From positions 1 through 64,000 of the IMG/VR virus record IMGVR_UViG_3300027816_000051: 64,000 nt of DNA; one strand, given 5' to 3'. Within the stretch, counting starts at the first letter, position 1; every line of letters starts with the position of its first letter. Of this stretch, positions 2,822 to 20,122 are shown piece after piece. The translations under genes and the position numbers were made by a program. Under the pieces are notes generated by a model that worked only from the letters and a program-made list of their open reading frames with translations, made no database searches and had not been told where the DNA came from.

Positions 2822-2840
2822 CCAATATGTCAAAGAACAA
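2822..2840 (-). promoter_or_regulatory. boxA-like antitermination element
   Basis: TTGTTCTTTGACATATTGG, identical to 5482-5500; resembles rrn boxA. Confidence 0.6.
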
Positions 2841-2871
2841 ATCTAATCAAAATATAAACAACAAAATCTTA

Positions 2872-2906
2872 AAAACAAAAAACCCGAACTTTTTTTGAGT
2901 TCGGGT
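2872..2906 (-). terminator. Intrinsic terminator of tRNA leader 1 (attenuator-like)
   Basis: ACCCGAACT-loop-AGTTCGGGT followed by T-rich tract. Confidence 0.8.
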
Positions 2907-2930
2907 CTTCTTATTAGTAGGTTAAGTTCC

Positions 2931-3035
2931 TTACACTTTTAAAAACTCCGAACATGGGTCACATAAATATATACCTCTCCCATTACCACTTAGTGGGTTG
3001 TTCAAGGGTTGTTGTATGTAAACCATTTTCATCAT
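2931..3035 (-). CDS. Putative leader peptide (34 aa, MMKMVYIQQPLNNPLSGNGRGIYLCDPCSEFLKV)
   Basis: Read by hand; lies between a consensus promoter and a terminator; its 3' end contains a strand complementary to the terminator 5' arm. Confidence 0.55.
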   Translation of the reverse strand: MMKMVYIQQPLNNPLSGNGRGIYLCDPCSEFLKV

Positions 3036-3052
3036 TTTGTTTATAACTATCA

Positions 3053-3083
3053 CAAAGATACAAAAAGTTTTTTAATTTCCAAG
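3053..3083 (-). promoter_or_regulatory. Bacteroidota sigma70-type promoter
   Basis: CTTG-N19-TATCTTTG. Confidence 0.8.
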
Positions 3084-3099
3084 TTTTTTTAAAAAAAAA

Positions 3100-3342
3100 T
3101 TAAAATAAATCTTCACACCATATTGGAGTCTTTTCACCAACGTAAGAACCGGAAACATTAAATTCAAAATATTCTACCGCTTCTGTCATATCCATTCCTT
3201 GATTCATAAGTATAGTGATACACTTCTCAACAGAATAGATTAATCTCATTGAAGATGTTTCAATTCCTATTACCGCATCATCAAATCCATCAGCAATTAA
3301 GATTTGTTCATCTTCGTATTGTTCTAAAATTTTTTCTAACAT
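3100..3342 (-). CDS. Hypothetical phage protein
   Basis: Start moved to MLEKIL (3342); ADGFDDAVIG...EYFEFNV..SYVGE.TPI is a protein-like pattern; upstream part of the track ORF is tRNA-Glu. Confidence 0.8.
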   Translation of the reverse strand: MLEKILEQYEDEQILIADGFDDAVIGIETSSMRLIYSVEKCITILMNQGMDMTEAVEYFEFNVSGSYVGEKTPIWCEDLF

Positions 3343-3370
3343 ATTGGTTTTTTTTAATTTAATTTCAGTG

Positions 3371-3442
3371 TAGCCCGACGGGGAATCGAACCCCGCTTTC
3401 ATCCGTGAAAGGGACGTGTCCTAACCGATAGACGACCGGGCC
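3371..3442 (-). tRNA. tRNA-Glu(TTC)
   Basis: CGTCC CTTTCAC GGATG anticodon arm. Confidence 0.93.
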
Positions 3443-3448
3443 AATTTG

Positions 3449-3536
3449 AGGAGAGTGAGGGATTCGAACCCCCGGAACCCTCACGAGTTCTCCTGATTTC
3501 AAGTCAGGTGCAATAAACCAACTCTACCAACTCTCC
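3449..3536 (-). tRNA. tRNA-Ser(TGA)
   Basis: CCTGA CTTGAAA TCAGG; long variable arm; discriminator U. Confidence 0.93.
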
Positions 3537-3540
3537 AATT

Positions 3541-3746
3541 ACCCCACCTGAGATTACGGTGAGTAGTCATTTCGGTTTATTTTCTTTCAAACAACCTGAA
3601 GGGCGTCCCCGTTAAAAAAAGTCAACACTACTGGGAGGAGGTGTGTCGCTCTCCTTTGTTCCCATGAAGTCCCACTCGCGCCGTAGACTTTCTGCGGAAT
3701 CATTCTTAAAGTCTTGATTCGAAGACTCTGAGTATCTCTTACTCAT
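3541..3746 (-). ncRNA. Candidate structured ncRNA (~205 nt)
   Basis: GC-richer non-coding spacer with hairpins TGAGTA/TACTCA, AGTCTT/AAGACT, GGAG/CTCC, AGTAGT/ACTACT, CTCACC/GGTGGG. Confidence 0.45.
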
Positions 3747-3748
3747 TG

Positions 3749-3820
3749 CGGTCCCACCGGGAATCGAACCCGGCACTTCGCCGTGACAGGGCGATATTAT
3801 AGCCGATTAACTATGAGACC
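3749..3820 (-). tRNA. tRNA-Asp(GTC)
   Basis: TCGCC CTGTCAC GGCGA; G73. Confidence 0.95.
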
Positions 3821-3826
3821 AATCGG

Positions 3827-3900
3827 AGCCTCCTGTCGGATTCGAACCAACGACCCGCTGATTACAAATCAGCTGCTCTGGCCAACTGAGCTAAGGAGGC
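3827..3900 (-). tRNA. tRNA-Thr(TGT)
   Basis: GCTGA TTTGTAA TCAGC. Confidence 0.95.
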
Positions 3901-3906
3901 AATAGT

Positions 3907-3990
3907 GGGTCAGAGTAGTCACGGCCACCTCTGTTCCTTCTGACCCTTGTCATAACCGTGGCAAGATGTGGCTCGACCCTAATTATGACC
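3907..3990 (-). ncRNA. Candidate two-hairpin RNA with loop-loop complementarity
   Basis: GTCATAA/TTATGAC and GGGTCAGA/TCTGACCC stems; loops carry GCCAC/GTGGC and CACGG/CCGTG complements. Confidence 0.5.
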
Positions 3991-3995
3991 ATTTG

Positions 3996-4067
3996 TTGCG
4001 GGGGTCGGATTCGAACCGACGACCTTTAGGTTATGAGCCTAACGAGCTACCACTGCTCTACCCCACG
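3996..4067 (-). tRNA. Initiator tRNA-fMet(CAT)
   Basis: C1:A72 mismatch (CGTGGGG/CCCCGCA); TTAGG CTCATAA CCTAA. Confidence 0.88.
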
Positions 4068-4068
4068 A

Positions 4069-4085
4069 TATATTTCAAAGAACAA
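4069..4085 (-). promoter_or_regulatory. boxA-like element (variant)
   Basis: TTGTTCTTTGAAATATA immediately 5' of tRNA-fMet. Confidence 0.5.
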
Positions 4086-4123
4086 ATAAAATATAAGAAG
4101 TAAATTCCATATTTCAAAATGTT

Positions 4124-4201
4124 TGGTTGCGGGACCCGGACTCGAACCGGGAACTTCAGCTTATGAGACTGACGAGATGACCACTTTCTACGCATCCCGC
4201 A
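4124..4201 (-). tRNA. Atypical tRNA(CAT), fMet-like with irregular D-arm
   Basis: TGCGGGA/TCCCGCA acceptor, TCAGT CTCATAA GCTGA, CCA encoded; about 3 extra nt before the D-stem. Confidence 0.7.
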
Positions 4202-4206
4202 ATGTT

Positions 4207-4283
4207 TGGTTGGAATAATAGGAATCGAACCTATAACCTTTCGCGTATCAGACGAATGCTCTAACCAATTGAGCTATATTCCA
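4207..4283 (-). tRNA. tRNA-Ile(GAT)
   Basis: TTCGT CTGATAC GCGAA; CCA encoded. Confidence 0.95.
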
Positions 4284-4286
4284 ATT

Positions 4287-4364
4287 TGGGGTAAATAATC
4301 GGATTCGAACCGACGACCTTCTGGACCACAATCAGACGTTCTAACCAACTGAACTATATCTACC
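4287..4364 (-). tRNA. tRNA-His(GTG)
   Basis: Loop TTGTGGT; encoded G-1 opposite C73; CCA encoded. Confidence 0.93.
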
Positions 4365-4372
4365 ATTTATAA

Positions 4373-4423
4373 ATTATAAGGTTCAAACCTTATAATGAAC
4401 CATTATAAGTCTCACACCTTATA
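4373..4423. repeat. Chain of overlapping short inverted repeats around TTATAA
   Basis: ATTATAAGGTTCAAACCTTATAATGAACCATTATAAGTCTCACACCTTATA. Confidence 0.6.
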
Positions 4424-4426
4424 TTG

Positions 4427-4500
4427 AGGTCCCGAGTGGATTCGAACCACCGAATAAGAGTTTTGCAGACTCCCCCCTTAAGCCACTTGGGTACAGGACC
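4427..4500 (-). tRNA. tRNA-Cys(GCA)
   Basis: GGAGT CTGCAAA ACTCT; U73. Confidence 0.93.
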
Positions 4501-4501
4501 G

Positions 4502-4576
4502 TGGTGATTCCTAAAGGACTCGAACCCTTACTTCAACGTCCGTAGCGTTGCGTGCTATCCATTACACCAAAGAACC
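4502..4576 (-). tRNA. tRNA-Arg(ACG)
   Basis: CAACG CTACGGA CGTTG; CCA encoded. Confidence 0.93.
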
Positions 4577-4577
4577 A

Positions 4578-5006
4578 TTACTTAATTCGTTCATCCCATT
4601 CTTCTTGGGTCCCCAATCTAATTGGAACGAACAATGCAAATCCATCATCATCTTCAAAATGGTTACAATCATCCTCTCTCCAACCAAACTTATATCTCAT
4701 GTGTATAAATTTGTTTGTCTCTTGATTCCATCTTGCGATTGTGGTATTTCTATGTTCACCAATATAAATTTGACCATTTACTAAATCTTTTTTAGGAATC
4801 GCACCTGCGTCAATTAGTTTCGGAACATAGAACTCTCTCCATTCTTTTTCATCCACTCTTGGAAGAGTTGGGACATCTTCGGGATTATTAATCTTTGGTA
4901 AATTCTCCCAATGATTCCTAATCATTCTTTCCCTCTCTTCTTTTAGTTTCATTTTCTCCGCTTCAAATTTCATTTTGACGGCGTTGATGTTATCATTTCT
5001 TTCCAT
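4578..5006 (-). CDS. Hypothetical protein
   Basis: Start moved to MERNDNI (5006); upstream part of the track ORF is tRNA-Trp/Val sequence. Confidence 0.8.
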   Translation of the reverse strand: MERNDNINAVKMKFEAEKMKLKEERERMIRNHWENLPKINNPEDVPTLPRVDEKEWREFYVPKLIDAGAIPKKDLVNGQIYIGEHRNTTIARWNQETNKFIHMRYKFGWREDDCNHFEDDDGFALFVPIRLGTQEEWDERIK

Positions 5007-5028
5007 GTCGTTTATTTTTAAAAGTTTG

Positions 5029-5099
5029 CACAGGTGGAGAGATTCGAACTCCCAACAACGGTTTTGGAGACCGGTATGATACCCTTTCACTACACCTGT
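5029..5099 (-). tRNA. tRNA-Trp(CCA)
   Basis: CGGT CTCCAAA ACCG anticodon arm. Confidence 0.93.
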
Positions 5100-5107
5100 G
5101 TATTGTG

Positions 5108-5180
5108 TAGTCCCTGTCGGATTCGAACCGACGACCCTCTGCATGTAAGGCAGACGCTCTCCCAACTGAGCTAAGGAACT
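5108..5180 (-). tRNA. tRNA-Val(TAC)
   Basis: TCTGC CTTACAT GCAGA. Confidence 0.95.
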
Positions 5181-5190
5181 ATGAAAGGAA

Positions 5191-5313
5191 AGAGGAAGAT
5201 GGTTCAGTGGACATCCTCTTTTACGATTGGCGTTACTTCAGGTGAATATCTGCAAACTCCGAATACATCATCCAATATTCACTCTCGAGATATTGATGTA
5301 TCATTCCCCAATC
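5191..5313 (-). ncRNA. Candidate pseudoknot/switch RNA
   Basis: GATTGG/CCAATC closing stem; crossing TACATCA/TGATGTA and GTGAATAT/ATATTCAC stems; trailing GAGGA/TCCTC hairpin. Confidence 0.5.
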
Positions 5314-5321
5314 AACCTTTG

Positions 5322-5395
5322 TGTCCCCGATGCGACTCGAACGCATAACCCCCACATTAAAAGTGTGGTGCTCTAACCAATTGAGCTACGAAGAC
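5322..5395 (-). tRNA. tRNA-Lys(TTT)
   Basis: CCACA CTTTTAA TGTGG. Confidence 0.95.
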
Positions 5396-5400
5396 AAATG

Positions 5401-5473
5401 TGGTACCGACAGGAATTGAACCTGTGACACCCAGATTTTCAGTCTGGTGCTCTACCAACTGAGCTACGGTACC
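5401..5473 (-). tRNA. tRNA-Phe(GAA)
   Basis: CCAGA CTGAAAA TCTGG. Confidence 0.95.
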
Positions 5474-5481
5474 ATTTTAAA

Positions 5482-5500
5482 CCAATATGTCAAAGAACAA
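5482..5500 (-). promoter_or_regulatory. boxA-like antitermination element
   Basis: TTGTTCTTTGACATATTGG, identical to 2822-2840. Confidence 0.6.
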
Positions 5501-5505
5501 CTTTG

Positions 5506-5575
5506 TGGACACTGTGGGAATCGAACCCAATCGTTCTGATTGCAAATCAGACGGTCTGCCGTTGACATCAGGCCC
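5506..5575 (-). tRNA. Atypical tRNA-Ala(TGC)
   Basis: TCTGA TTTGCAA TCAGA; G3:U70 present; bulged or mismatched acceptor stem; A at position 8. Confidence 0.75.
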
Positions 5576-5582
5576 ATAAAAC

Positions 5583-5610
5583 AAAAAAACCTCGAGATTT
5601 CTCCCGAGGT
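5583..5610 (-). terminator. Intrinsic terminator of tRNA leader 2 (attenuator-like)
   Basis: ACCTCGGGA-GAAA-TCTCGAGGT followed by a T run. Confidence 0.85.
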
Positions 5611-5638
5611 TCCTTTATATCGTTTTAAACTAAACAAC

Positions 5639-5728
5639 TTACAAGACACCTCGGGACATGCAAATATCAGCCACCTCCGCCCATTTTGAACAGATTGTAA
5701 ATGACATTGTATGTGTAAAGCGTCTCAT
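5639..5728 (-). CDS. Putative leader peptide (29 aa, MRRFTHTMSFTICSKWAEVADICMSRGVL)
   Basis: Read by hand; between promoter and terminator; contains TCCCGAGGT, a perfect 9-nt complement of the terminator 5' arm. Confidence 0.6.
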   Translation of the reverse strand: MRRFTHTMSFTICSKWAEVADICMSRGVL

Positions 5729-5758
5729 TGAAGTTTTATTTAATTTTAAAATCTTTTA

Positions 5759-5790
5759 CAAAGATAATAATAAGTATGCTGAAAAACAAG
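5759..5790 (-). promoter_or_regulatory. Bacteroidota sigma70-type promoter heading the tRNA array
   Basis: CTTG-N20-TATCTTTG. Confidence 0.8.
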
Positions 5791-5843
5791 AAAAGTTTGA
5801 AATTTTTTTAAAAAAATATATATAACAATCTCGATTGCCGAGG

Positions 5844-5851
5844 TATTTATA
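5844..5851 (+). promoter_or_regulatory. Putative phage late-promoter motif TATTTATA
   Basis: Same octamer precedes many structural genes on either strand. Confidence 0.6.
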
Positions 5852-5887
5852 GTAAACCAAATAAATAAACTAAACTAAATTACAACT

Positions 5888-6142
5888 ATGAACTTCAAAA
5901 AATGGATTATTGACCTTTTCAAAGATGAAAGAGGGTCAACTTCAATCAAACCGGTAATCGCCCTTTTAGGTGCATTATTCCTTTGCGGAACCATGATGGC
6001 AAATTCTTTTACACATGGTGACATTAAACCATCAGAAGAATTGGTAAACGCGGTGATGGTCATTACCGCTATTGGAATGGGTGCAGATACTTTAGATAAG
6101 TTCTCACATAAAAAGAAATCAGACGACGAAGTTTCTGAGTAA
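5888..6142 (+). CDS. Small 2-TM membrane protein (holin-like)
   Basis: Two hydrophobic segments and a charged C-terminus. Confidence 0.6.
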   Translation: MNFKKWIIDLFKDERGSTSIKPVIALLGALFLCGTMMANSFTHGDIKPSEELVNAVMVITAIGMGADTLDKFSHKKKSDDEVSE

Positions 6143-6147
6143 AAATT

Positions 6148-6172
6148 ATGGGGTTAGATAACCCCATTTTTT
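6148..6172 (+). terminator. Intrinsic terminator
   Basis: ATGGGGTT-AGAT-AACCCCAT plus T run. Confidence 0.7.
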
Positions 6173-6179
6173 CTTTTTT

Positions 6180-8590: not shown

Positions 8591-8594
8591 AACT

Positions 8595-8933
8595 ATGAGC
8601 GACGAAACAAACGTACCAGAATCTGACGGAACATGGTCAGGCCTTAAGAAAACATTAATCGGAACTATTTCAACCGCAATTTTAGCTGGTGGTACATGGT
8701 TTACTACTACTCTTATGGGTGGTGGTGAAGAAAAAAATGAACCCACACCAACTCAACAATCGGCACCTGTTATTAATTTAAATGTAGATAATTCTTCTAA
8801 GAACACATCATCAAGTGGTGGGGGAAATACTACAATTATAAAAGAAAGAGTGGTTGAAAAACCATCCAAATCAGAACCTTCTAAACCTAAAAAAGAAGGT
8901 GATGAATTTAAAGAAAAAGAACCACAATGGTAA
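8595..8933 (+). CDS. Membrane-anchored low-complexity protein
   Basis: One N-terminal hydrophobic segment; Ser/Pro/Lys/Glu-rich tail. Confidence 0.75.
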   Translation: MSDETNVPESDGTWSGLKKTLIGTISTAILAGGTWFTTTLMGGGEEKNEPTPTQQSAPVINLNVDNSSKNTSSSGGGNTTIIKERVVEKPSKSEPSKPKKEGDEFKEKEPQW

Positions 8934-9475: not shown

Positions 9476-9476
9476 T

Positions 9477-10284: not shown

Positions 10285-10286
10285 AT

Positions 10287-12083: not shown

Positions 12084-14365
12084 GAAATGTACTATTTTTT
12101 ATATTGTTTTTGTTGTTACCTGTCTTAGCTTTTTCACAAGCAACAACAATGTCATTGGGTACAAGTAGTACGGGTGTGGTATCATCTACTTACAATACAT
12201 GGACCAAGGTTGACCCTAATTTAACAATTACAGCAAATGGGACAATAAATGGATTTAGAGTTCAAATATCTCAAACGTACACAAGTGGCGACCAATTGAG
12301 GTCAACATCAACTTTACCAACAGGTGTGAGTGCTTCTTTTAATACTACCACAGGTATATTAGTATTTTCGGGCACAGCAAGTGCAAGTGATTGGCAAACA
12401 GTATTGAGAGGTGTTGAATTTAAATCAACAACATCAACTTGTTACCCACTACAAAGGAGAGTCACATTTGTTGCTGGTTTAGTTTTTTACAACCCATTAA
12501 CTGAACATTTTTATGAATATGTTTCATCATCAGGTTCATGGACAACCGCAAAAACTAATTCTGAGTTAAGGTCTTATTTTGGTAGAGCCGGTTATTTAGC
12601 GACCATGTCTTCTGAAGCTGAAAATAATTTTATTTGGAAATTAATGTCATCAGATGGTTGGTTTGGGGCGTCGGATGAGATGAGTCAGGTTAATACCGCT
12701 AAGGGTTCTACCGTTTATACTTCACAAGCGGCGGTAGAACAAAAATGGCATTGGGTGTCAGGTCCTGAGAAGGGGACACAGTTTTCTAACGGTAGTACCG
12801 CGGTAACGGGTCAATACTCAAAATGGGCTGGTGGTGAACCAAATAATGCGGGTGGTGAACATTATGCACAATTTTATTCCGCGAACAGTGGACAATGGAA
12901 TGATTTACCTAACACTAACTTACCCGGTTATATTTGTGAATATGGAGACATGCCAAACGACCAAACATCAAGTATCACAATATTAACAAGGAATGTTGAA
13001 ATCAGTAACGCTTCAAGTGGTTACATAAGTGGTGGTAACATAAATGTTTGTTCGGGTAGTAACAGCACAACTTTAACGTTAAATGGGTATACAGGTAGTA
13101 TTGTTAGATGGGAATCTTCTTTTGATAACTTTTTTACCGCAGCAACCACAATATCGAGTACATCTTCAAGTATAACAGTAACCAACTTAACTAAAACCAC
13201 ATACTACAGAGCGGTAATAAATTCAACAAGTCCTGTGAGTTGTACAGGTTTAGTAACATCAAGTGTTTATCTGTCTGTAAAACCAACAAAATCAGGTTCA
13301 GTATTTGCGGTAAATAATAGTATATGTGCGGGAGGGCAATCCGAATTAACATTATCTGGTCAACAAGGTAATGTAAATAAATGGCAACGCTCAACTAATG
13401 GAACAACATGGACCGATATATCAAATACAACCACAAGTCTTACCGAAACAATTAGTAGCGCCGGAACTTATTATTATAGGGTAGAAGTTCAAACTCCAAA
13501 TTGTGGTAGTGCGGTCTTTTCTGATTCTAAAATAATCACAGTTACATCGGGAACACCTCCTGTTGGTGGTTCTATATCTTCATCAACACATACTTCTACA
13601 ACAAACTCAGGAACACTTACACTAAGTAGTTACACGGGTACAATTGTTAAATGGCAACGTTCAACAAATGATGGTGTAACATGGACTGACATTGTAAACA
13701 CATCGACAACTTATTCATACACAAATATAACCGTCAAAACATTGTTCAGAGCTCAATTACAAAGTGGTACTTGTGGTTTCGCTTATAGTTCATCAGGTTC
13801 TGTAACGATTATAACTGAAACAATAATCGGTACAATTACGATACCTACAGGTTTATCGGTAAGACCACAAGTAAAATTATATTTGGTTGAAAATGGTGTT
13901 GAGACACTGTTACAAACTGTCACGGTTGGTACAACAGGTACTTACACTTTAAACCCAACAAAATATAACTCAACTTATAAAATAGTTCCTTCGTTTTCAT
14001 CATCATTAACGTCCGCAGATTTTGATAATGTTTTTAATGAGTCACAAAACGAAAATACACCGAGTTTATTACAACCCGGTGTAGTATTGAATAATGGCCC
14101 GAAAATGAAAGCTGGCGATATTAATAAAGATGGTAAGGTAACAATATCGGATGCGTACTTATTAGGTGCTAATTTAACAAGTATGATAACATTTGATGAG
14201 GTTTATTGGTACACCGCGAATGATTTTAATTCGTTAACAATATCAAACTTCAATACAGTCACTCCATCAAATAATTTCTCAATAAATTTTACAAATACAT
14301 CAGTTACTTTTAACATCAAGTATATTGTAAAAGGAGATGCTAACTTATCTTCTTCGTCTTATTGA
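12080..14365 (+). CDS. C-type lectin / Ig-like repeat / dockerin-like adhesin
   Basis: Signal peptide; GYLAT..SEAENNFI..W.G.SD..W.W..G..Y.KWAGGEPNN..E....WND..YICEY C-type lectin; three ICxG..LTLxG..G....WQ repeats; GDINKDGKVTISDAYLL...KGDAN dockerin-like end. Confidence 0.85.
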   Translation: MRNVLFFILFLLLPVLAFSQATTMSLGTSSTGVVSSTYNTWTKVDPNLTITANGTINGFRVQISQTYTSGDQLRSTSTLPTGVSASFNTTTGILVFSGTASASDWQTVLRGVEFKSTTSTCYPLQRRVTFVAGLVFYNPLTEHFYEYVSSSGSWTTAKTNSELRSYFGRAGYLATMSSEAENNFIWKLMSSDGWFGASDEMSQVNTAKGSTVYTSQAAVEQKWHWVSGPEKGTQFSNGSTAVTGQYSKWAGGEPNNAGGEHYAQFYSANSGQWNDLPNTNLPGYICEYGDMPNDQTSSITILTRNVEISNASSGYISGGNINVCSGSNSTTLTLNGYTGSIVRWESSFDNFFTAATTISSTSSSITVTNLTKTTYYRAVINSTSPVSCTGLVTSSVYLSVKPTKSGSVFAVNNSICAGGQSELTLSGQQGNVNKWQRSTNGTTWTDISNTTTSLTETISSAGTYYYRVEVQTPNCGSAVFSDSKIITVTSGTPPVGGSISSSTHTSTTNSGTLTLSSYTGTIVKWQRSTNDGVTWTDIVNTSTTYSYTNITVKTLFRAQLQSGTCGFAYSSSGSVTIITETIIGTITIPTGLSVRPQVKLYLVENGVETLLQTVTVGTTGTYTLNPTKYNSTYKIVPSFSSSLTSADFDNVFNESQNENTPSLLQPGVVLNNGPKMKAGDINKDGKVTISDAYLLGANLTSMITFDEVYWYTANDFNSLTISNFNTVTPSNNFSINFTNTSVTFNIKYIVKGDANLSSSSY

Positions 14366-14703
14366 ATTTGAATTATTTTATTGTAAGTGTCGGTAATCTC
14401 ACCACATGTTTCATAATCTTCATTGGTTTCAAAGAAAGGTAAGATATCTCTAACTAATACTATTGATTCTTGTCTCTTAAATTTTAATTCGGTCTCCCAC
14501 TGTAAACCATTTATCTTAGCGCCCAAGACTAAAGTTACATTGTTTTTATCTTTTCTTTTGAGACTTTTAAATAGATTCGCTAAGGTGCGATAAATAAGTT
14601 CTTTATTGACGTTGTAAAAATCACCAAAACTTTTATAGTCTTGTTTTAGTATTAACTTCTTGATTACGGTGTCATTTGGTTTTTTAGGTAGTTTTGTTGA
14701 CAT
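14359..14703 (-). CDS. Hypothetical protein
   Basis: Clean ORF with an upstream near-consensus host promoter (TTTG-N20-CATATTTG). Confidence 0.7.
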   Translation of the reverse strand: MSTKLPKKPNDTVIKKLILKQDYKSFGDFYNVNKELIYRTLANLFKSLKRKDKNNVTLVLGAKINGLQWETELKFKRQESIVLVRDILPFFETNEDYETCGEITDTYNKIIQIQ

Positions 14704-14786
14704 TGTCGATTTAATTATTGGTTCATCACAAATATGAACAATAAAGTCGACATAAACAAACTTTACCCCAAATTGTTTAAAGTATT

Positions 14787-15197
14787 TTATACAGTATGTT
14801 CAATCTGAACCCGTACACAATTTTGTGGTAATCTATGGATGTGTCTGTAATTGTTGATGTAACCCATCATATTGGCACTACCAATCGCGTTAGCTGAATG
14901 TATAACAACATCAACAACTGGTTTACCATCCAACCATTGTTCCACTAACCACTTGGTACAATCCATACCTGTTTTTTCTTTGATGTTGTTGTAGTCTAAT
15001 TCGTAATTATGATAAACATTACGATGCCATTCAGCCATTGCGGTATCACCTAAATCATGGTCAAGAGAAATTAAACTAATATTCTCCAATCCAATTTCTG
15101 ATACTTTCTCAACAAACTCCTCATATGTTCGAACAATGACCCATTCGTCCTTTAGTACTGGTGTTCTAACGTCATCTAAATAAATTCTTTTTTTCAT
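14787..15197 (-). CDS. Cyclic-phosphate-processing receiver-domain protein
   Basis: IYLDDVRTP, ISLDHDLG, TGMDCTKWL and IHSANAIG motifs; adjacent to RNA ligase and kinase. Confidence 0.8.
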   Translation of the reverse strand: MKKRIYLDDVRTPVLKDEWVIVRTYEEFVEKVSEIGLENISLISLDHDLGDTAMAEWHRNVYHNYELDYNNIKEKTGMDCTKWLVEQWLDGKPVVDVVIHSANAIGSANMMGYINNYRHIHRLPQNCVRVQIEHTV

Positions 15198-15213
15198 TGT
15201 ATGATTTTTCTTA

Positions 15214-16299
15214 CTAATTCTCTTCATCTTTTTTAAATGGTTTTGAATATGGTGGATATAATATTTTCCATATTATATTTTTATATGATTTACCATCCAA
15301 CATATTAAACAGTATTGAAGGGTGGGAATATCTTTTAGCTAATTCAGCAAACTCCGCTCGGGTAAATTCTTTTTGGTATGATTCAAAATAAACGTTACGA
15401 ATTTTGTTGAATATCCATTTATATTCCTTTTCGATATTTTCAAATCGAATCACAAAGTCCTTTACCGTTTCTTTCACCCAACTATTAAATTCATCTGGTA
15501 CCTTCTCAAGTAACTCATCAAATGGTTTATCTTCTTTAAGATATTCCCAAATATCTCTACTTGACACATTAGTTAGTATTCTATGTAAACGAACATACTC
15601 TTCGAATTTTATTTTCATTCTAAAGTTCGATGGGTAGAAACGAATAACAAACCCTTCACTATTTGGGGTGTTTAGTTTTTTATAGTTGTCAAATGTTTCC
15701 TTGTTGAAGGTTACCATAGTGCTATCGACAATATCTTTCTCTTCAATATCCGATGAATGAAAAATTGCTCGAGCGGTGTGCCAGTTTAATTCTCCTATGG
15801 GTGTTGTTACAGATAAAAAGGTAATCTTATCACAACCATAGTTCACTACTATCCTATTTTCGGGATAAATAATTTCACATAAATAGGTAACTTCCTTCAT
15901 GAATTTACTTAAATCATATTTTGATTTAAGAATTTCTAAACCACGAATGGATTGTTCCGAGGTAAAAGAACCTCTTGTTGACATAATCCATTCACCATCA
16001 TAAAAGAAAAGGATTCCAAGAGAACCATCCATTTTATCTTGGATGTGAGTATACTCACTATCCCAAGGAATTAAATTTTTATCAATAACCTCTTCGTAGT
16101 TGAAAAATTTACCAAATGGTTTTGATATTACTTCTCCTGAATGGGTTGTAATAAGACCACGACATTGCATAGTAATATCATCCCACAAAGATTCATATTG
16201 TACTCTTGGTGTGTAATTCCATATGTACAAATCTTTGGTTGGGTGAGTTTGTTTCATTAACAAACCATCCTTATGATATCTCTCTAAAACTTCAATCAC
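15214..16299 (-). CDS. rnlA: T4 Rnl1-like RNA ligase
   Basis: QCRGLI, KPFGKFFNYEE, motif I DKMDGSLG, TYLCEII, EGFVIRF, MKIKFEEY. Confidence 0.92.
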   Translation of the reverse strand: MIEVLERYHKDGLLMKQTHPTKDLYIWNYTPRVQYESLWDDITMQCRGLITTHSGEVISKPFGKFFNYEEVIDKNLIPWDSEYTHIQDKMDGSLGILFFYDGEWIMSTRGSFTSEQSIRGLEILKSKYDLSKFMKEVTYLCEIIYPENRIVVNYGCDKITFLSVTTPIGELNWHTARAIFHSSDIEEKDIVDSTMVTFNKETFDNYKKLNTPNSEGFVIRFYPSNFRMKIKFEEYVRLHRILTNVSSRDIWEYLKEDKPFDELLEKVPDEFNSWVKETVKDFVIRFENIEKEYKWIFNKIRNVYFESYQKEFTRAEFAELAKRYSHPSILFNMLDGKSYKNIIWKILYPPYSKPFKKDEEN

Positions 16300-16709
16300 A
16301 ACTTAATTTCAAAACGATTTTTCATAATCTCTAATTTGTCTTCAGGAACTCCATGTATGTTCTCACCACCGTGTCTGTTTTCAACCACAATAGTGTGAAC
16401 TCTGTAACCATATCTTTTAGCCATTTCAAAATATGGCTCCATTTCCCATTCTTGTGTAAAAGTGTTTGAAACAACAACCCTAACAACACTATTCATCATT
16501 AAATTGGCACATCTTTGTTGACAATCATTATGTGCTTCCCTTAATTTTGTTGGGTCGAAATTATAATTACCCTCTTTATCTGTAAAGTAATCGTCCGCAG
16601 ACAATGGTTTCAACGGGTTATTTGGAGTGTATAAAATTATCTCCCCTAAAGTAGATTTACCCGAACCAGGTAACCCTCTCACTAAAATCAAATCTTTTGT
16701 ATATTCCAT
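16296..16709 (-). CDS. Stand-alone polynucleotide kinase (P-loop, AAA_33-like)
   Basis: LVRGLPGSGKST Walker A; SADDYF; VSNTFTQEWE; HGVP; no HAD phosphatase domain. Confidence 0.85.
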   Translation of the reverse strand: MEYTKDLILVRGLPGSGKSTLGEIILYTPNNPLKPLSADDYFTDKEGNYNFDPTKLREAHNDCQQRCANLMMNSVVRVVVSNTFTQEWEMEPYFEMAKRYGYRVHTIVVENRHGGENIHGVPEDKLEIMKNRFEIKL

Positions 16710-16727
16710 GATAAATTAGATTTATCA

Positions 16728-16759
16728 CAAATATACGTATTAATTTTTAGAATACCAAA
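16728..16759 (-). promoter_or_regulatory. Bacteroidota sigma70-type promoter of the RNA-repair operon
   Basis: TTTG-N20-TATATTTG. Confidence 0.8.
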
Positions 16760-16763
16760 AAAA

Positions 16764-16792
16764 ATAAAAACCCCCAACGGTGAGTCGGGGGT
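16764..16792 (-). terminator. Intrinsic terminator downstream of the clp gene
   Basis: CCCCC...GGGGG hairpin followed by T-rich tract. Confidence 0.7.
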
Positions 16793-16901
16793 TTGCGGTC
16801 ATTTTGTGGATTCAACACCACGGACTATAAAACGAGAGGAAATCGGCAAAGATATCCTGTGTGAATATAAATATATATGTTTTTTTAAAAAGTCTGAATA
16901 T

Positions 16902-18920
16902 TTACCCCTTTTTTTTAAAAATTTTTATTTCTCCGTCTTTAATTTTCAAATTAATTGTTTCGTTTTCTTTGATTTCACCTCTTAAAATTGAATCACTTAA
17001 ATAATCTTCACACATATTTTGGATAATTCTTTTAATAGGTCTCGCACCAAAATCTTCTTGTGTATTCAATTCAGATATCCTTTCTACAATTGTTTTATCA
17101 AAAGAAACTTTAAAATTCTTTTCTTTAAGTCGGATTACTAATTTATTCAATTCAATCTCAATAATCTTTTTAATCACATCTTTATCTAAAGAATTAAAAC
17201 TGATTATATCATCTACTCGATTTAAAAACTCAGGATTAAAATGTTGTTTGAGTGATTTTTGAACAATTGACTTTTTGACTTCATAGTTTTGAGACGTTGA
17301 TGACGACGAACTAAACCCAACACCCTTACCGAATTCGGATACTTTTTTAGCACCGATGTTAGATGTCATAATCACAATAGTGTTGGTAAAATTCACTTTT
17401 CTTCCAAAAGAATCTGTCAAGTGCCCCTCATCCAATATTTGAAGTAGAATGTTGAACACATCTTTATGTGCTTTTTCAACCTCATCAAATAGAACTACTG
17501 AGAATGGATTATTTTTGATTTTTTCAGTGAGTTGTCCACCTTCATCATAACCAACATATCCTGGAGGTGACCCGATTAATTTAGCAACATTGTGTTTTTC
17601 CATGTACTCACTCATGTCAACACGAATTACTTTTTCAGCATCCCCAAAAAGTAGTTCGGCGATACTTTTAGCGAGATACGTTTTACCAACACCTGTTGAA
17701 CCTAAGAAAATAAAAGAACCGATTGGTTTATTGGTATCTTTGATACCAACTCTATTTCTTCTAATGGCTTTAGAGATGATTGATATTGCCTCGTCCTGTC
17801 CAATCACTTTAGATTTTAATTTTTCTTCTAAATTTAATAGATTTGTTGTTTCTCTGTCATCAATTTTAGAAAGAGGTACTCCAGTTATTTGTGATATTAT
17901 CTCGTAAACATCAGCAATTGTTACTGGTGTTTTATTGTCTTTTTGTTTATCTAACCATTTCTTTTTCTCTTCATCTAACTTACTTAATAACTTTCTTTCT
18001 TCATCACGTAACTTAGCTGCCTGTTCGTAGTTTTGACTTTTAACGACTTGTATTTTTTTATCCTTCAAATCATCAGATTCCTTTTTAAGTTTTTCAATAA
18101 TTTCGGGAATCTTTGTGTTGATTTTTTTATCAGAACCTAATTCGTCCATTACGTCAATCGCCTTATCGGGGAACTGACGGTCCGTGATAAATCTAGATGA
18201 GAGACTAACAATAGTTTCAAAAACTTCCGGTTCGTAAAAAACTTTATGGAAGTTTTGATAAGAATCTCTTAGGTTATTTAGAATTTGTACGGTTTCTTCT
18301 TTAGTTGGTTCTTTAAGGATTATCTTTTGGAATCTACGAACCAACGCACCATCTTTTTCGATATGTTTTTTAAATTCGTCAAATGTTGTTGCACCAATAC
18401 ATTGAATTTCACCCCTTGCTAAAGCGGGTTTCATAATATTAGCAGCATCCATTGAACCACTAGCATTACCCGCTCCAACCATAGTGTGAATCTCATCTAT
18501 GAATACAATTACGTTTGGTTCGTTCTGTAATTCATTTAGAATAGCTTTAATCCTTTCTTCAAACTGTCCTCTATATTTCGTGCCAGCAACTAAGGATGTT
18601 AAATCTAACGAGACTATTCTCTTATCTAAAAGATTTGATGGACAATCTCCCTTGACAATCATTTGTGCTAATTTTTCAACCAACGCTGATTTACCAACAC
18701 CCGCATCACCAACTATTACTACGTTGTTTTTCTTTTTTCGAGATAATATCTGTGCAATTCTCTTGACCTCACTATCTCGACCTATAACGGGGTCTACTTT
18801 ACCCTCTTCAACCATTTTATTCAAATCTCTTGAAAAGTTATCAAGGATAGGGGTGGTTGAACCCTTCCTTGTTTTCTTTGGGTTGGTTGTGTTTCCTTCT
18901 TCGAAAAAATCTACTGACAT
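16902..18920 (-). CDS. clpC: ClpC/ClpA-type Hsp100 AAA+ ATPase lacking the N-terminal Clp-repeat domain
   Basis: LDNFSRDL, DPVIGRD, GDAGVGKS, RGQFEER, UVR-like QNYEQAAKLRDEE, GSTGVGKT, GSPPGYVGY, FGARPI. Confidence 0.9.
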   Translation of the reverse strand: MSVDFFEEGNTTNPKKTRKGSTTPILDNFSRDLNKMVEEGKVDPVIGRDSEVKRIAQILSRKKKNNVVIVGDAGVGKSALVEKLAQMIVKGDCPSNLLDKRIVSLDLTSLVAGTKYRGQFEERIKAILNELQNEPNVIVFIDEIHTMVGAGNASGSMDAANIMKPALARGEIQCIGATTFDEFKKHIEKDGALVRRFQKIILKEPTKEETVQILNNLRDSYQNFHKVFYEPEVFETIVSLSSRFITDRQFPDKAIDVMDELGSDKKINTKIPEIIEKLKKESDDLKDKKIQVVKSQNYEQAAKLRDEERKLLSKLDEEKKKWLDKQKDNKTPVTIADVYEIISQITGVPLSKIDDRETTNLLNLEEKLKSKVIGQDEAISIISKAIRRNRVGIKDTNKPIGSFIFLGSTGVGKTYLAKSIAELLFGDAEKVIRVDMSEYMEKHNVAKLIGSPPGYVGYDEGGQLTEKIKNNPFSVVLFDEVEKAHKDVFNILLQILDEGHLTDSFGRKVNFTNTIVIMTSNIGAKKVSEFGKGVGFSSSSSTSQNYEVKKSIVQKSLKQHFNPEFLNRVDDIISFNSLDKDVIKKIIEIELNKLVIRLKEKNFKVSFDKTIVERISELNTQEDFGARPIKRIIQNMCEDYLSDSILRGEIKENETINLKIKDGEIKIFKKKG

Positions 18921-19030
18921 ACGAAATAATTTTCTTTAAGTATACAAAAAGAATCCCGTAAAAACAAATGTTGACTCCGAGAAGTTGTTTTTAGGAATAT
19001 CAGTTTCTACAAACATAAATAAAAAATGAC

Positions 19031-19050
19031 ACCCCTACAAGGGGTTTTTT
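19031..19050 (+). terminator. Hairpin/terminator in divergent intergenic region
   Basis: ACCCC-TACAA-GGGGT plus T run. Confidence 0.5.
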
Positions 19051-19091
19051 ATTTGATATTTATTATGTATACTAATATCTAAAAAAAAATT

Positions 19092-19337
19092 ATGTCAATT
19101 ATTTTAGAAAAAACAGAAGGTAACATTACAGAGGTTGTGGTTTCATCATCAAATCTGAATCGAGCGATTTATAATTCCTCTGAAAACCATTTATCGATTG
19201 AATTTAATAATGGCTCTATTTATGAGTATGAAAATGTGCCGCTAGAGATTTTTGAAAATTTTAAAAAATCGGAATCTCAAGGTAAATTTTTTAATTCGAA
19301 TATATCGAGAACGTACAAATATAAAAAAATCAAATGA
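19092..19337 (+). CDS. KTSC-domain protein
   Basis: SSNL...Y....L.IEFNNGSIYEYENVP...F.....S.GKFFN..I. Confidence 0.9.
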   Translation: MSIILEKTEGNITEVVVSSSNLNRAIYNSSENHLSIEFNNGSIYEYENVPLEIFENFKKSESQGKFFNSNISRTYKYKKIK

Positions 19338-20122
19338 GTGTAATTGATGAAATAATTGAAGATATGGAAAAGGACCAAGAGATTGTAAAGTCTTTTGTTC
19401 CAAAAGAGACATTACCAAAAAATATCTTTGATATTAATAATGGTAAATCTATTTTAAATTCTGAAGTCAGAAAAAAAATGTTAGAAATAACAGAAGAATT
19501 TATTGACTTTGTTGGAGTTAATTTTTTCATTTACGATATTATTTTTATTGGTTCATTAGCAAACTATAATTGGTCTGAATATTCAGACGTTGATATTCAC
19601 ATATTAATCGATTATGACGAATTTGATGAGTCCGAAAACAAAGACTTGGTCGTTTATCATCAAATTGTGCAAGAGTTTTTTGATGTCAAAAGAAGATTGT
19701 GGAATGAAACCACAGACATTAAAATAAAAGGATACGAGGTCGAAATGTACGTTCAAGACGTAGATGACAAATATGTTGCTACGGGTGTTTATTCAATTTT
19801 AAATAACGAATGGATTGTTGAACCTAAAAAAATTGAGTCGGCTTTCGATATAGATGAGAAGAAAATTTTAGAAAAGTCTGAAGAATATGCGAAAGAGGTA
19901 GAACGTTTAGAAGACTTAAACAACAAAGGTCAAGACGTTTCAAAAGAAATAAAAACCCTAAAAGATAAACTTAAAAAATTCAGACAGTCGGGATTAGAAA
20001 AAGGAGGTGAGTATTCTTATGAAAATTTAACCTTCAAATTATTAAGAAGAAATGGGTTTATCGAAAAACTTTTTAATATCAAAAGTTCAATACGAAATAA
20101 AAAATTGTCCTTACCGCAATAG
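19334..20122 (+). CDS. Pol-beta superfamily nucleotidyltransferase
   Basis: IGSLANYNWSEYSDVDIHIL (hGS..DxD) and YEVEMYVQD. Confidence 0.85.
   Translation: MSVIDEIIEDMEKDQEIVKSFVPKETLPKNIFDINNGKSILNSEVRKKMLEITEEFIDFVGVNFFIYDIIFIGSLANYNWSEYSDVDIHILIDYDEFDESENKDLVVYHQIVQEFFDVKRRLWNETTDIKIKGYEVEMYVQDVDDKYVATGVYSILNNEWIVEPKKIESAFDIDEKKILEKSEEYAKEVERLEDLNNKGQDVSKEIKTLKDKLKKFRQSGLEKGGEYSYENLTFKLLRRNGFIEKLFNIKSSIRNKKLSLPQ

Follow-up and report, generated by a model that had tools for sequence, protein, structure and literature searches.

Leader ORFs written in the codons of their own tRNA block, putative transcription attenuators of the tRNA operons of a large freshwater Bacteroidota phage

Results

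Organization of the tRNA region

The window analysed here is a stretch of 64,000 nucleotides (positions 1 to 64,000 of IMG/VR record IMGVR_UViG_3300027816_000051), in which 23 tRNA genes were identified on the minus strand at 573-5473, with a further tRNA cut by the contig start at 1-57 and a weak tRNA-Ala-like piece at 5506-5575. The tRNA genes are arranged in two blocks, each headed by a unit of promoter, short ORF, intrinsic terminator and boxA-like 19-mer, as follows (all minus strand):

5759-5766: Bacteroidota-type -7 promoter box TATCTTTG of leader 1, with a TTG about 20 nt upstream
5639-5728: leader ORF 1, 29 codons plus stop, with codons 2-22 as the "sensing" part
5645-5655: seg1 of leader 1, the last codons of the ORF, complementary to the 5' half of the terminator (antiterminator strand)
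5582-5613: intrinsic terminator of leader 1 (seg2 5613-5601; seg3 plus T-run 5596-5582)
5506-5575: tRNA-Ala(UGC)-like element between the terminator and boxA, with G3:U70 but two acceptor-stem mismatches
5482-5500: boxA-like 19-mer 1, 9 nt before tRNA-Phe
3370-5473: tRNA block 1 (Phe, Lys, Val, Trp, Arg(ACG), Cys, His, Ile(GAT), Met, Met, Thr, Asp, Ser(UGA), Glu), with one embedded ORF
4071-4084: internal boxA variant (TGTTCTTTGAAATA) before tRNA-Met, preceded by a promoter-like site at 4117-4090 and no terminator
3053-3060: -7 promoter box TATCTTTG of leader 2
2931-3035: leader ORF 2, 34 codons plus stop, with codons 2-24 as the sensing part
2941-2955: seg1 of leader 2, antiterminator strand inside the end of the ORF
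2876-2911: intrinsic terminator of leader 2
2822-2840: boxA-like 19-mer 2, 12 nt before tRNA-Leu(UAA)
1-2810: tRNA block 2 (Leu(UAA), Arg(UCU), Pro, Asn, Leu(UAG), Tyr, Ile(UAU), Met, Gly(GCC) and a cut Gly(UCC)), with embedded ORFs and a freshwater-1 RNA, continuing beyond the contig start

The tRNA-Ala-like element scored 31.8 bits with the Rfam tRNA model, whereas the homologous piece in another locus of the comparison (L017) scored 47.3 bits, with anticodon UGC. The promoter 8-mer TATCTTTG occurs 9 times in the window against 4.2 expected, so that on its own it is only weakly informative. On the other hand, the 19-mer TTGTTCTTTGACATATTGG occurs twice in the window against 0.07 expected, and it was found in 68 viral contigs, almost always inside tRNA arrays on the same strand.

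Alternative pairing in the leaders

In each leader the last codons of the ORF (seg1) match the 3' half of the terminator, so that seg1 can pair with the terminator's 5' half (seg2) as an antiterminator. In leader 1, the seg1:seg2 hairpin folds at -24.6 kcal/mol against -19.6 for the terminator, and the stop codon lies 6 nt after seg1, whereas in leader 2 the antiterminator folds at -15.6 kcal/mol against -17.9 for the terminator. In both leaders the start-codon region pairs with seg1 in a 5' hairpin (-23.9 kcal/mol in leader 2); although this "protector" hairpin is clear in the window, it is not statistically general across families (median z = -1.6).

This architecture recurs in dozens of otherwise unrelated viral contigs, where a terminator and a small ORF whose end matches the terminator's 3' half lie upstream of the 19-mer, with stem sequences that differ between loci. 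The longest seg1:seg2 Watson-Crick run averaged 6.29 against 4.55 +/- 0.19 in shuffles. Moreover, 27 of 31 leaders have an ORF of at least 20 codons ending at seg1, against 3.3 +/- 1.6 in shuffles. It could be argued that the small ORFs are incidental or encode micropeptides, and that the hairpins are either ordinary terminators or small-RNA genes upstream of constitutively transcribed tRNAs, or else a protein- or RNA-binding switch unrelated to translation. Indeed, translation of the ORFs is inferred from sequence alone, leader 1 folds very stably (z = -6.55), as a structured RNA would, and the N-terminal peptide sequences are conserved within families. However, the frequency of ORFs ending at seg1, the seg1/seg3 duplication with varying sequence and the codon-tRNA matching described below have no explanation under this view, and the terminators follow a promoter directly and end no upstream gene; hence, we consider it very unlikely.

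Codons of the leaders and tRNAs of their own blocks

The codons of each leader are those read by the tRNAs of its own downstream block. In leader 1, 18 of 21 sensing codons are read by the tRNAs of block 1 (genome background 0.46, P = 0.0013) and all 13 tRNA species of the block are sampled, whereas in leader 2, 20 of 23 sensing codons are read by the tRNAs of block 2 and all 12 species are sampled. Three of the latter tRNAs lie beyond base 1 of the window, but are seen in L044, a locus 100% identical over 2817 nt. The exclusive-codon table was 17:1 against 1:18 (Fisher p = 2e-8), and no random stretch of this phage's genes covered all species in 300,000 trials.

Across 14 leaders, precision for the leader's own block was 0.656 against 0.383 +/- 0.042 when permuted, a value reached by none of 100,000 permutations, and recall was 0.924 against 0.591 +/- 0.052. 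Although leaders of one family are not independent data points, and some leaders match their arrays poorly (for example, locus L011 at 0.26, these arrays being cut by locus ends), the result held in a second, out-of-sample set anchored on a different motif, where precision was 0.427 against 0.287, reached only by the true assignment among 40,320 permutations, and recall was 0.839 against 0.572.

In this regard, the leaders might sense general translation capacity (ribosome loading, elongation rate, coupling) rather than particular tRNAs, with codon content being secondary, since any slowing of the lead ribosome would free seg1, only 1-3 codons per tRNA are present, and many leaders share an A-rich MKN start. 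Nevertheless, this reading does not explain why two leaders in one genome use nearly disjoint codon sets that follow their own blocks, why every tRNA species of a block is sampled, or why this replicates in a second set, and we regard it as unlikely.

RNA-repair operon and other translation-related genes

Further genes related to RNA repair and translation were identified in the window:

14359-14703 (minus strand): conserved 114-aa protein at the end of the repair operon
14787-15227 (minus strand): cRec (cyclic-phosphate-processing receiver) domain protein, predicted healer of 2',3'-cyclic phosphate ends
15214-16299 (minus strand): Rnl1-family RNA ligase (361 aa), with motif I KxDG
16296-16709 (minus strand): P-loop polynucleotide-kinase-like protein (137 aa, P-loop GLPGSGKST)
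16902-18920 (minus strand): two-ring Clp/Hsp100 ATPase (ClpB/ClpA/ClpC-like, no N-terminal domain), upstream on the same strand
19092-19337 (plus strand): KTSC-domain protein (81 aa)
19334-20122 (plus strand): Pol-beta-type nucleotidyltransferase candidate (GS..DxD motif)
28129-28287 (minus strand): phage-encoded ribosomal protein bS21

The kinase was supported by Pfam AAA_33 (E = 2.9e-13) and by a PHROG annotated as polynucleotide kinase; the ligase by PF09511 (E = 8.5e-15) and PHROG 562 (E = 3.7e-61), its motif I lysine aligning with that of T4 Rnl1 in 2c5u; and the cRec protein by PF20274 (E = 1.4e-22), its role being a prediction from PMC7824862. The 114-aa protein returned no family match, but is syntenic in three related loci (L113, L114 and L115), and the Clp/Hsp100 ATPase is 74-93% identical in relatives. 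The KTSC assignment is firm (PF13619, E = 2.2e-19), whereas that of the nucleotidyltransferase is weak, since the Pfam NTP_transf_2 match (E = 0.0013) was below the cut-off, a DrrA-like motif alignment gave E = 0.2, and a fold search with a poor structure model gave nothing significant. For bS21, PF01165 scored 41.6 bits, above the cut-off, and the protein fits the bS21 phage clades of PMC9723584.

Relationship between the tRNA array and RNA repair

A sequence-only reading of this DNA had described translation-coupled leaders and boxA on the tRNA array, an RNA-repair operon under the same host-type promoter class, KTSC plus nucleotidyltransferase, and bS21, and every one of these items is indeed present in the sequence. 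That reading further inferred an integrated rescue system, in which the phage senses host translation shut-down, switches on replacement tRNAs and repairs cut ones. This interpretation was only partly supported: demand-driven tRNA supply is strongly supported, by evidence that goes further than that of the earlier reading, whereas integration with RNA repair is not supported.

In favor of a single stress-sensing circuit, all modules are present within 28 kb, the ClpB-like/kinase/Rnl1/cRec and KTSC/nucleotidyltransferase blocks are syntenic in relatives at 50-75% amino-acid identity, TAnnTTTG-type boxes precede both the leaders and the kinase gene, and the theme is plausible, the general idea that jumbo phages pair tRNA provisioning with RNA repair against attacks on translation being already published (PMC7824862). 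However, among 32 large viral records carrying the 19-mer, Rnl1 occurs only in 6 close kin of this phage. Near-complete genomes with the 19-mer in their tRNA arrays carry another ligase type or no ligase that we found: one (G004) pairs kinase and cRec with an Rnl2-type ligase, another (G027) has RtcB, and a third, 100% complete (G021), has neither Rnl1, RtcB nor cRec; of the three, a leader ORF was verified only for G021 (locus L046). Furthermore, no leader-peptide attenuator or boxA precedes the kinase/Rnl1 operon, and the shared -7 box is a generic host promoter element.

In four metatranscriptomes the array is represented by contigs at least 99% identical, which cover its spacers, whereas none at that identity cover the repair region. 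One contig spans leader 2, its terminator, boxA and the start of tRNA-Leu (2795-3042), ending at 3042, about where transcription would start. These are assembled contigs without strand or depth information, and read-through there could equally reflect constitutive leakiness. Taken together, we consider the integrated system unlikely.

Discussion

The window holds the tRNA region of a jumbo phage of about 290 kb that infects freshwater Bacteroidota, in which the tRNA genes form at least two operons, and the best reading, held with fairly good though not full confidence, is that each is gated by a ribosome-mediated transcription attenuator that supplies tRNAs on demand. We found no prior description of such an arrangement. 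In this model, a host-type promoter starts a transcript that opens with the 29- or 34-codon ORF. If the ribosome translates smoothly to the stop codon, it would cover seg1, the downstream seg2 and seg3 would fold into the intrinsic terminator, and RNA polymerase would stop before the tRNAs. If the ribosome stalls earlier in the ORF, seg1 would be free to pair with seg2, the terminator could not form, and polymerase would read on through a boxA element, which presumably recruits NusB/NusE for processive antitermination through the untranslated array, and make the tRNAs. If no ribosome loads at all, pairing of the start-codon region with seg1 in both window leaders should leave the terminator intact, as in classical 1:2 / 2:3 / 3:4 attenuators.

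The codons in the stall-competent part of each ORF follow the tRNAs of the same operon down to the isoacceptor, for example ATA with Ile-UAU, ATC/ATT with Ile-GAU, AGA with Arg-UCU, CGC with Arg-ACG, TCA with Ser-UGA, and AGT with Ser-GCU. Shortage of any one of those tRNAs would therefore switch on the operon that supplies it, and abundance would switch it off, as a direct negative feedback. Sequence and comparison establish the anatomy, its recurrence with varying stem sequences, the ORF statistics and the codon-tRNA matching, whereas translation of the ORF, stalling, the direction of the switch, conditional termination and Nus-factor use are inferred, all evidence being computational. Each tRNA is represented by only 1-3 codons rather than the tandem runs of classical attenuators, so that a stall would need severe depletion. 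The kinase/Rnl1/cRec operon is best regarded as a separate heal-and-seal tRNA-repair module, and bS21, a tmRNA just beyond the contig start, and KTSC as further independent translation-support genes.

Leader-peptide attenuators of amino-acid biosynthesis operons (trp, his, thr, leu, phe, ilv) likewise have a short ORF directly after the promoter, mutually exclusive antiterminator and terminator hairpins with the ORF overlapping the switch strand, a 5' hairpin that sequesters the switch strand when untranslated (as in the window leaders), and regulatory codons chosen to report on the product's availability. Here, however, the regulated products are tRNAs themselves and not enzymes, the ORF carries one to three codons for each of up to 13-17 different tRNAs instead of a run for one amino acid, matching is at the isoacceptor (codon) level, a boxA follows the terminator, and the system is phage-borne; the Rfam His and Thr leader models matched only at chance level (E = 0.6-1.0). 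T-box riboswitches are also leader RNAs with terminator/antiterminator alternatives that report on tRNA status, but they bind one uncharged tRNA directly, need no translation, control synthetase or amino-acid genes and are typical of Firmicutes, whereas here a ribosome reading many codons would be the sensor, and no T-box match was found with Rfam.

With regard to rRNA-operon boxA and lambda nut boxA, the core GTTCTTTGA fits the boxA consensus, and the element is placed at the head of a long untranslated, structured transcript. The 19-mer is identical to a true rRNA-operon boxA site in a Balneolaceae genome, after tRNA-Ile and tRNA-Ala and 138 nt before the 23S gene, and boxA is necessary and sufficient for assembly of the rrn antitermination complex (PMC10250234). 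Nevertheless, the exact 19-mer is mostly not at rRNA operons in bacterial genomes, so that its boxA identity rests on one rRNA operon plus the general consensus. In the phages, it lies after an attenuator terminator at the head of tRNA arrays, in a 19-nt extended form conserved across unrelated phages.

The repair operon recalls T4 Pnkp and Rnl1, which repair tRNA-Lys cut by the anticodon nuclease PrrC, in that an Rnl1-family ligase with the motif I lysine is encoded beside a P-loop polynucleotide kinase in a phage that also carries tRNAs. In contrast, the kinase is a stand-alone 137-aa protein without the HAD phosphatase domain, end-healing is predicted to fall to a cRec-domain protein, repair activity is inferred, and there is no known cognate host nuclease. 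The neighborhood is one more example, with no difference in kind, of the cRec-RNA ligase operons of jumbo phages (Iyer et al., 2021; PMC7824862), where cRec lies next to an RNA ligase and a kinase, with the same proposed role and the same general pairing with tRNA provisioning, in a paper that does not mention attenuators (no occurrence of "attenuat"). Finally, while the study of bS21-encoding freshwater Bacteroidota phages (Chen et al., 2022; PMC9723584) does not describe the regulation of the tRNA arrays (no occurrence of "terminator"), those phages share with this one the genome size, about 33% GC, freshwater origin, 5-25 tRNAs, and bS21 on the reverse strand near the terminase gene.

Genomic context and layout of the tRNA region

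The window is the first 64 kb of a 288,260-bp IMG/VR virus record estimated to be 92% complete, and it has about 33% GC. It carries a T4-type large terminase, a protein with a type IX secretion sorting domain and the ribosomal protein bS21 on the reverse strand, and near-identical DNA is present in many lake and freshwater metagenomes. All of this fits the freshwater bS21-encoding phages of 293-331 kb that infect Bacteroidota (PMC9723584). The genes that bear on this placement are the following:

23722-25497, plus strand: T4-type large terminase
28129-28287, minus strand: bS21 (Ribosomal_S21, 41.6 bits, above the cut-off), on the reverse strand near the terminase gene, the context described in PMC9723584
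6674-8590, plus strand: 638-aa protein ending in a type IX secretion sorting domain (Por_Secre_tail, E = 3e-8)
12080-14365, plus strand: 761-aa protein with a weak C-type lectin match

The last two are probably host-surface-binding or structural proteins, and they point to a Bacteroidota host.

ARAGORN identified 23 tRNA genes, all on the minus strand between 573 and 5473 and none elsewhere in the genome, while Rfam added a tRNA cut by the contig start (1-57) and a weak tRNA-like piece at 5506-5575. On the minus strand, two units share the same layout, namely a Bacteroidota-type -7 box TATCTTTG with a TTG about 20 nt upstream, a short ORF, a GC-rich hairpin followed by a T-run, the 19-mer TTGTTCTTTGACATATTGG, and a tRNA 9-12 nt later:

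5728-5639, minus strand: leader ORF 1, 31 nt after its -7 box
5613-5582, minus strand: intrinsic terminator of leader 1
3035-2931, minus strand: leader ORF 2, 18 nt after its -7 box
2911-2876, minus strand: intrinsic terminator of leader 2

The first unit lies in a divergent intergenic region, so its terminator ends no upstream gene. A scan for sigma-70 consensus promoters was uninformative (18 sites found against 17.8 expected). The RNA-repair operon, the KTSC gene, the nucleotidyltransferase candidate and bS21 are likewise where a previous sequence-only reading had placed them, and the observation made in that reading is confirmed.

Attenuator anatomy of the leaders

In both units the last codons of the ORF (seg1) repeat the sequence of the 3' half of the terminator (seg3), and both are complementary to the 5' half of the terminator (seg2), in the classical 1:2 / 2:3 / 3:4 arrangement. 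The whole of leader 1 folds with z = -6.55.

Predicted folding energies of the alternative structures (kcal/mol; leader 1, leader 2)
seg1:seg2 antiterminator: -24.6, -15.6
seg2:seg3 terminator: -19.6, -17.9
5' hairpin (start-codon region paired with seg1): -31.4, -23.9

The exact 19-mer occurs in 68 viral contigs, almost always inside tRNA arrays on the same strand and often 6-14 nt before a tRNA. Upstream of it, most loci have a terminator and a small ORF ending in a seg1 that matches seg3, and the stem sequences differ between loci, with cores that include CCCATCTC, CCCGAAC, CCTCGGG, CCAGTC, GCTTCGA and CCCCTCTC. Two shuffle tests support this architecture. Across 21 distinct stems, the longest seg1:seg2 Watson-Crick run averaged 6.29 against 4.55 +/- 0.19 in dinucleotide shuffles. 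Furthermore, 27 of 31 leaders have an ATG-initiated ORF of at least 20 codons whose stop lies within a few nucleotides of seg1, against 3.3 +/- 1.6 (maximum 8) in shuffles; the other four also have ORFs, which fell outside our search window. In nearly all of the 27 leaders the stop codon falls -1 to +18 nt from the end of seg1, with one algorithmic outlier at -11, so that a ribosome finishing the ORF would occlude the 5' strand of the antiterminator. A 5' protector hairpin, which we expected to be general across leader families, is clear in the window but not significant overall.

Each leader indexes the tRNAs of its own block

We defined a sensing part of each ORF as codon 2 up to 10 nt before seg1, since a ribosome stalled there would leave seg1 free, and conservative, simplified wobble rules were applied. 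For 14 leaders from about 11 families, the fraction of sensing codons read by the tRNAs of the leader's own downstream block was 0.656, against 0.383 +/- 0.042 when blocks were permuted among leaders, and none of 100,000 permutations reached the observed value. Conversely, 92.4% of the tRNA species of a block have a cognate codon in its leader, against 59.1 +/- 5.2% when permuted, and ten of the 14 leaders cover every species. Leaders within a family are not independent, and blocks cut by locus ends add noise to these figures. In the window, the two leaders use almost disjoint codon sets, without tandem runs of one codon.

Sensing codons of the two window leaders (leader 1, leader 2)
Sensing codons read by own block: 18 of 21, 20 of 23
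Sensing codons read by the other block: 2, 3
Codons exclusive to block 1 : block 2: 17 : 1, 1 : 18
tRNA species of own block sampled: 13 of 13, 12 of 12

Fisher's exact test on the exclusive-codon table gave p = 2e-8, and random stretches of this phage's own genes covered about 6 species on average and never all of them in 300,000 trials. Three tRNAs of block 2 (Gly-UCC, Gln and Ser-GCU) lie beyond base 1 of the window, and are seen in locus L044, which is 100% identical to the window over the 2817 nt from boxA 2 to base 1 and continues further.

The matching is at the codon level and not at the amino-acid level. Ile is ATC/ATT in leader 1, whose block has Ile-GAU, and ATA twice in leader 2, whose block has Ile-UAU; Ser is TCA in leader 1 and AGT in leader 2; and Arg is CGC in leader 1 and AGA in leader 2, with one AGA in leader 1 being a misfit. 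The other two misfits of leader 1 are Ala codons, and the tRNA-like piece between its terminator and boxA is a tRNA-Ala(UGC) with G3:U70, scoring 47.3 bits in the relative L017 and 31.8 bits here. Moreover, the window has Val-UAC in the array and Val codons in the leader, whereas L017 has neither.

Since the hypothesis arose from the first set, a second search was anchored on a different boxA variant joined to a T-run. Of 61 non-identical contexts, 14 had a terminator and 12 of those carried a leader ORF, including new families, for example a leader rich in I, N, K, P and R before Pro, Asn, Ile-UAU and Arg-UCU. For eight of these leaders, own-block precision was 0.427 against 0.287 +/- 0.039, reached only by the true assignment among all 40,320 permutations, and recall was 0.839 against 0.572 +/- 0.063 (P about 1e-4).

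The boxA-like element

The core GTTCTTTGA fits the boxA consensus. In the Balneolaceae rRNA operon of locus L082, the exact 19-mer lies after tRNA-Ile and tRNA-Ala, 138 nt before the 23S gene, and a related site lies 76 nt before the 16S gene, these being the two canonical boxA positions, whose role in assembling the antitermination complex has been described (PMC10250234). We expected the exact 19-mer to be the rRNA boxA of the hosts; however, in other bacterial genomes it is rare and not at rRNA operons, and only the rRNA operon of L082 carries it exactly. The extended 19-mer is therefore largely specific to phage tRNA arrays, and only the core is generic boxA. Its position after the terminator of the attenuator would make functional sense, since a termination-resistant polymerase should be assembled only after the regulatory decision, although this step is inference.

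At 4071-4117 (minus strand), an internal promoter-like site (TTGAAA, 16-nt spacer, TATATT) is followed by a boxA variant and tRNA-Met, with no terminator; the distal half of block 1 may also have an ungated promoter. In addition, this phage encodes a tmRNA about 4.6 kb beyond base 1 of the window (L044, 13556-13955), with its own TATCTTTG box and a boxA-like TGTTCTTTGACTTA directly before it, and no attenuator. The record of the phage itself lacks this tmRNA because the contig ends, and tmRNAs are also present in loci L024 and L042.

Evidence for transcription of the array

Evidence of transcription is weak but consistent. Four freshwater metatranscriptomes, available as assembled contigs, contain contigs at least 99% identical on the array, including non-tRNA spacers at 2443-2709, 3474-3664 and 3559-3719. 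One contig spans 2795-3042, that is leader 2, its terminator, boxA and the start of tRNA-Leu, and ends about where transcription should begin. These data cannot show conditional termination, but the same runs have no such contigs on 13500-19400, which argues against DNA carry-over.

The RNA-repair module and its neighbours

On the minus strand, a two-ring Clp/Hsp100 ATPase gene is followed by genes for a stand-alone P-loop kinase, an Rnl1 ligase, a cRec-domain protein and a conserved 114-aa protein. The ligase matches PF09511 (E = 8.5e-15), and its KxDG motif, with the motif I lysine, aligns with T4 Rnl1 in 2c5u. The kinase matches AAA_33 (E = 2.9e-13) and PHROG 505 'polynucleotide kinase' (E = 8.6e-9), with a P-loop reading GLPGSGKST, but it has 137 aa and no second domain, so that the HAD-type 3'-phosphatase / cyclic phosphodiesterase domain of T4 Pnkp is absent from it. 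A cRec protein (PF20274, E = 1.4e-22), with DD and D motifs, is encoded instead next to the ligase, overlapping the end of the Rnl1 gene. The operon may work like Pnkp/Rnl1, but is not the T4 arrangement. The block, together with the divergent KTSC/nucleotidyltransferase pair, is syntenic in relatives at 50-75% identity, with one relative lacking cRec; the cRec-ligase synteny holds in the records G009 and G017. The location of cRec next to RNA ligases in jumbo phages, its predicted role in opening 2',3'-cyclic phosphates, for which enzymatic activity has never been shown, and the general pairing of RNA repair with tRNA provisioning have already been described by Iyer et al. 2021 (PMC7824862), where KTSC is mentioned only as a possible RNA-binding helper.

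The nucleotidyltransferase candidate is a motif-level call only. It scores 19.6 bits against NTP_transf_2 (cut-off 21), and its GS..DxD motif aligns to DrrA at E = 0.2. NCBIfam and PDB sequence searches yielded no annotation, and no similarity was found to the RlaP (PF10127) of G004, a complete 299-kb phage record. An AlphaFold2 model built with four orthologues reached a pLDDT of 62.6, with a best Foldseek match at E = 0.025.

No attenuator or boxA precedes the kinase gene. At 16760-16854 (minus strand), between the ClpB-like gene and the kinase gene, there is only a conserved unit of about 90 nt, comprising a promoter-like box, a small hairpin whose stem sequence varies between relatives, and a strong terminator, which is also present in the related loci L113, L114 and L115 and represents a candidate small RNA.

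Distribution of the modules among related viruses

The sequence-only reading had inferred a possible integrated translation-rescue system, in which the phage senses host translation shut-down, switches on replacement tRNAs and repairs cut ones, and it had named independent distribution of the modules, together with tRNA output insensitive to translation stress, as grounds for rejection. The co-occurrence check that it had proposed was run on 32 viral records longer than 60 kb that carry the 19-mer.

Records carrying each gene (of 32)
Rnl1: 6, all close kin of this phage
cRec: 11
RtcB: 3
bS21: 12

Near-complete genomes that carry the 19-mer in tRNA arrays differ from one another. G021 (269 kb) has none of the ligases or cRec, and G027 (376 kb) has RtcB. 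G004 pairs kinase and cRec with an Rnl2-type ligase, an Rv2179c-like 3'-5' exoribonuclease, an RlaP nucleotidyltransferase and a dATP/dGTP diphosphohydrolase (locus L116, 3102-11227), and the kinase-cRec pair therefore travels with different ligases. Among these three, the leader ORF was verified only for G021 (locus L046), and the G004 and G027 sites had no terminator by our criteria. The modules are thus separable and show no shared control element beyond a generic host promoter box. Independent distribution is largely observed for the link to RNA repair, and not for the tRNA-sensing part; the sequence-only interpretation is supported only in part.

Interpretation and comparison with known systems

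The proposed mechanism belongs to ribosome-mediated transcription attenuation, from which it differs in what is regulated (tRNA genes), in how the sensor is written (a multi-codon index of the contents of the operon, specific to isoacceptors), in its coupling to boxA, and in its phage setting. It is not a T-box, and Rfam returned no known leader or riboswitch above threshold, the matches to His_leader (25.4 bits against 49) and Thr_leader (22.1 bits against 55) having E = 0.6-1.0, so that the leaders of the window are not members of these families, though the architecture is similar. Near and distant BLAST searches of the region and of two leaders against GenBank phage records found nothing relevant, and full-text literature searches found no prior description of leader-peptide control of tRNA genes or phage tRNA arrays, although coverage of the literature was incomplete and this is not proof of novelty. 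The repair operon, bS21 and KTSC, on the other hand, add further examples to systems already described.

Although the layout, its recurrence and the codon-tRNA matching are read from sequence and comparison, the mechanism as a whole is inferred from sequence; this applies to the dependence of termination on translation of the leader and on supply of charged tRNA, to the binding of NusB/NusE with processive antitermination, and to the direction of the switch, which is deduced from geometry. With this reservation, we consider it somewhat more likely than not that uncultured jumbo phages of Bacteroidota share a previously undescribed class of regulatory element, in which a translated leader ORF acts as a codon-by-codon index of the tRNA genes behind it, so that a ribosome stall at any indexed codon opens an attenuator and, through a downstream boxA, transcribes that tRNA operon. 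This would be the first known direct feedback from decoding demand to tRNA gene transcription, and would act as a built-in detector of host tRNA depletion or cleavage.

How phages control their tRNA genes, and why they carry particular sets of them, is an old open question, for which current ideas are codon compensation and replacement of tRNAs destroyed by host defences or by host shut-off. A leader whose codons list the tRNAs of its own operon makes this question testable, since it predicts which shortage induces which operon, and it gives a natural single-tRNA stall reporter for Bacteroidota, where Shine-Dalgarno-independent translation and attenuation are little studied. Moreover, the promoter, index ORF, seg1 resembling seg3, T-run and boxA constitute a sequence signature that can be searched for in other phages and in cellular tRNA operons, and show boxA, as identified from sequence, being used by phages at the head of tRNA arrays. 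The result also corrects the tempting view that every translation-related gene in the neighbourhood forms one circuit.

Other elements of the tRNA array

A freshwater-1 RNA (Rfam RF02979, 84.7 bits against a gathering score of 72) lies inside the array at 2562-2623 (minus strand), between tRNA-Leu(UAA) and tRNA-Arg(UCU), and the RNA-library contig covering 2443-2709 shows no differences. The same motif is present in the arrays of relatives (L024, L027, L028, L044 and L063), which gives an orphan motif a genomic home in phage tRNA arrays. A GOLLD RNA (302.7 bits) sits near the tRNA array of a 234-kb relative (L042, 3658-4066, minus strand).

Protein-coding ORFs at 4578-5005, 3100-3402, 1336-1895 and 715-1166 (minus strand) are embedded in the array and abut or overlap the neighbouring tRNA genes, with one stop codon lying inside tRNA-Ile at 1345, which implies mRNAs cut out of the tRNA precursor; the families are of unknown function (PHROGs 18490 and 13182). 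A 134-aa ORF with Cys-rich, HNH-like motifs at 122-526 (minus strand), next to the array, may be a homing endonuclease. Finally, one of the three CAU-anticodon tRNAs, for which initiator, elongator Met or lysidine-modified Ile identities may be considered, is atypical (4124-4194, minus strand), since ARAGORN places its anticodon at position 30 and Rfam scores it only 35 bits.
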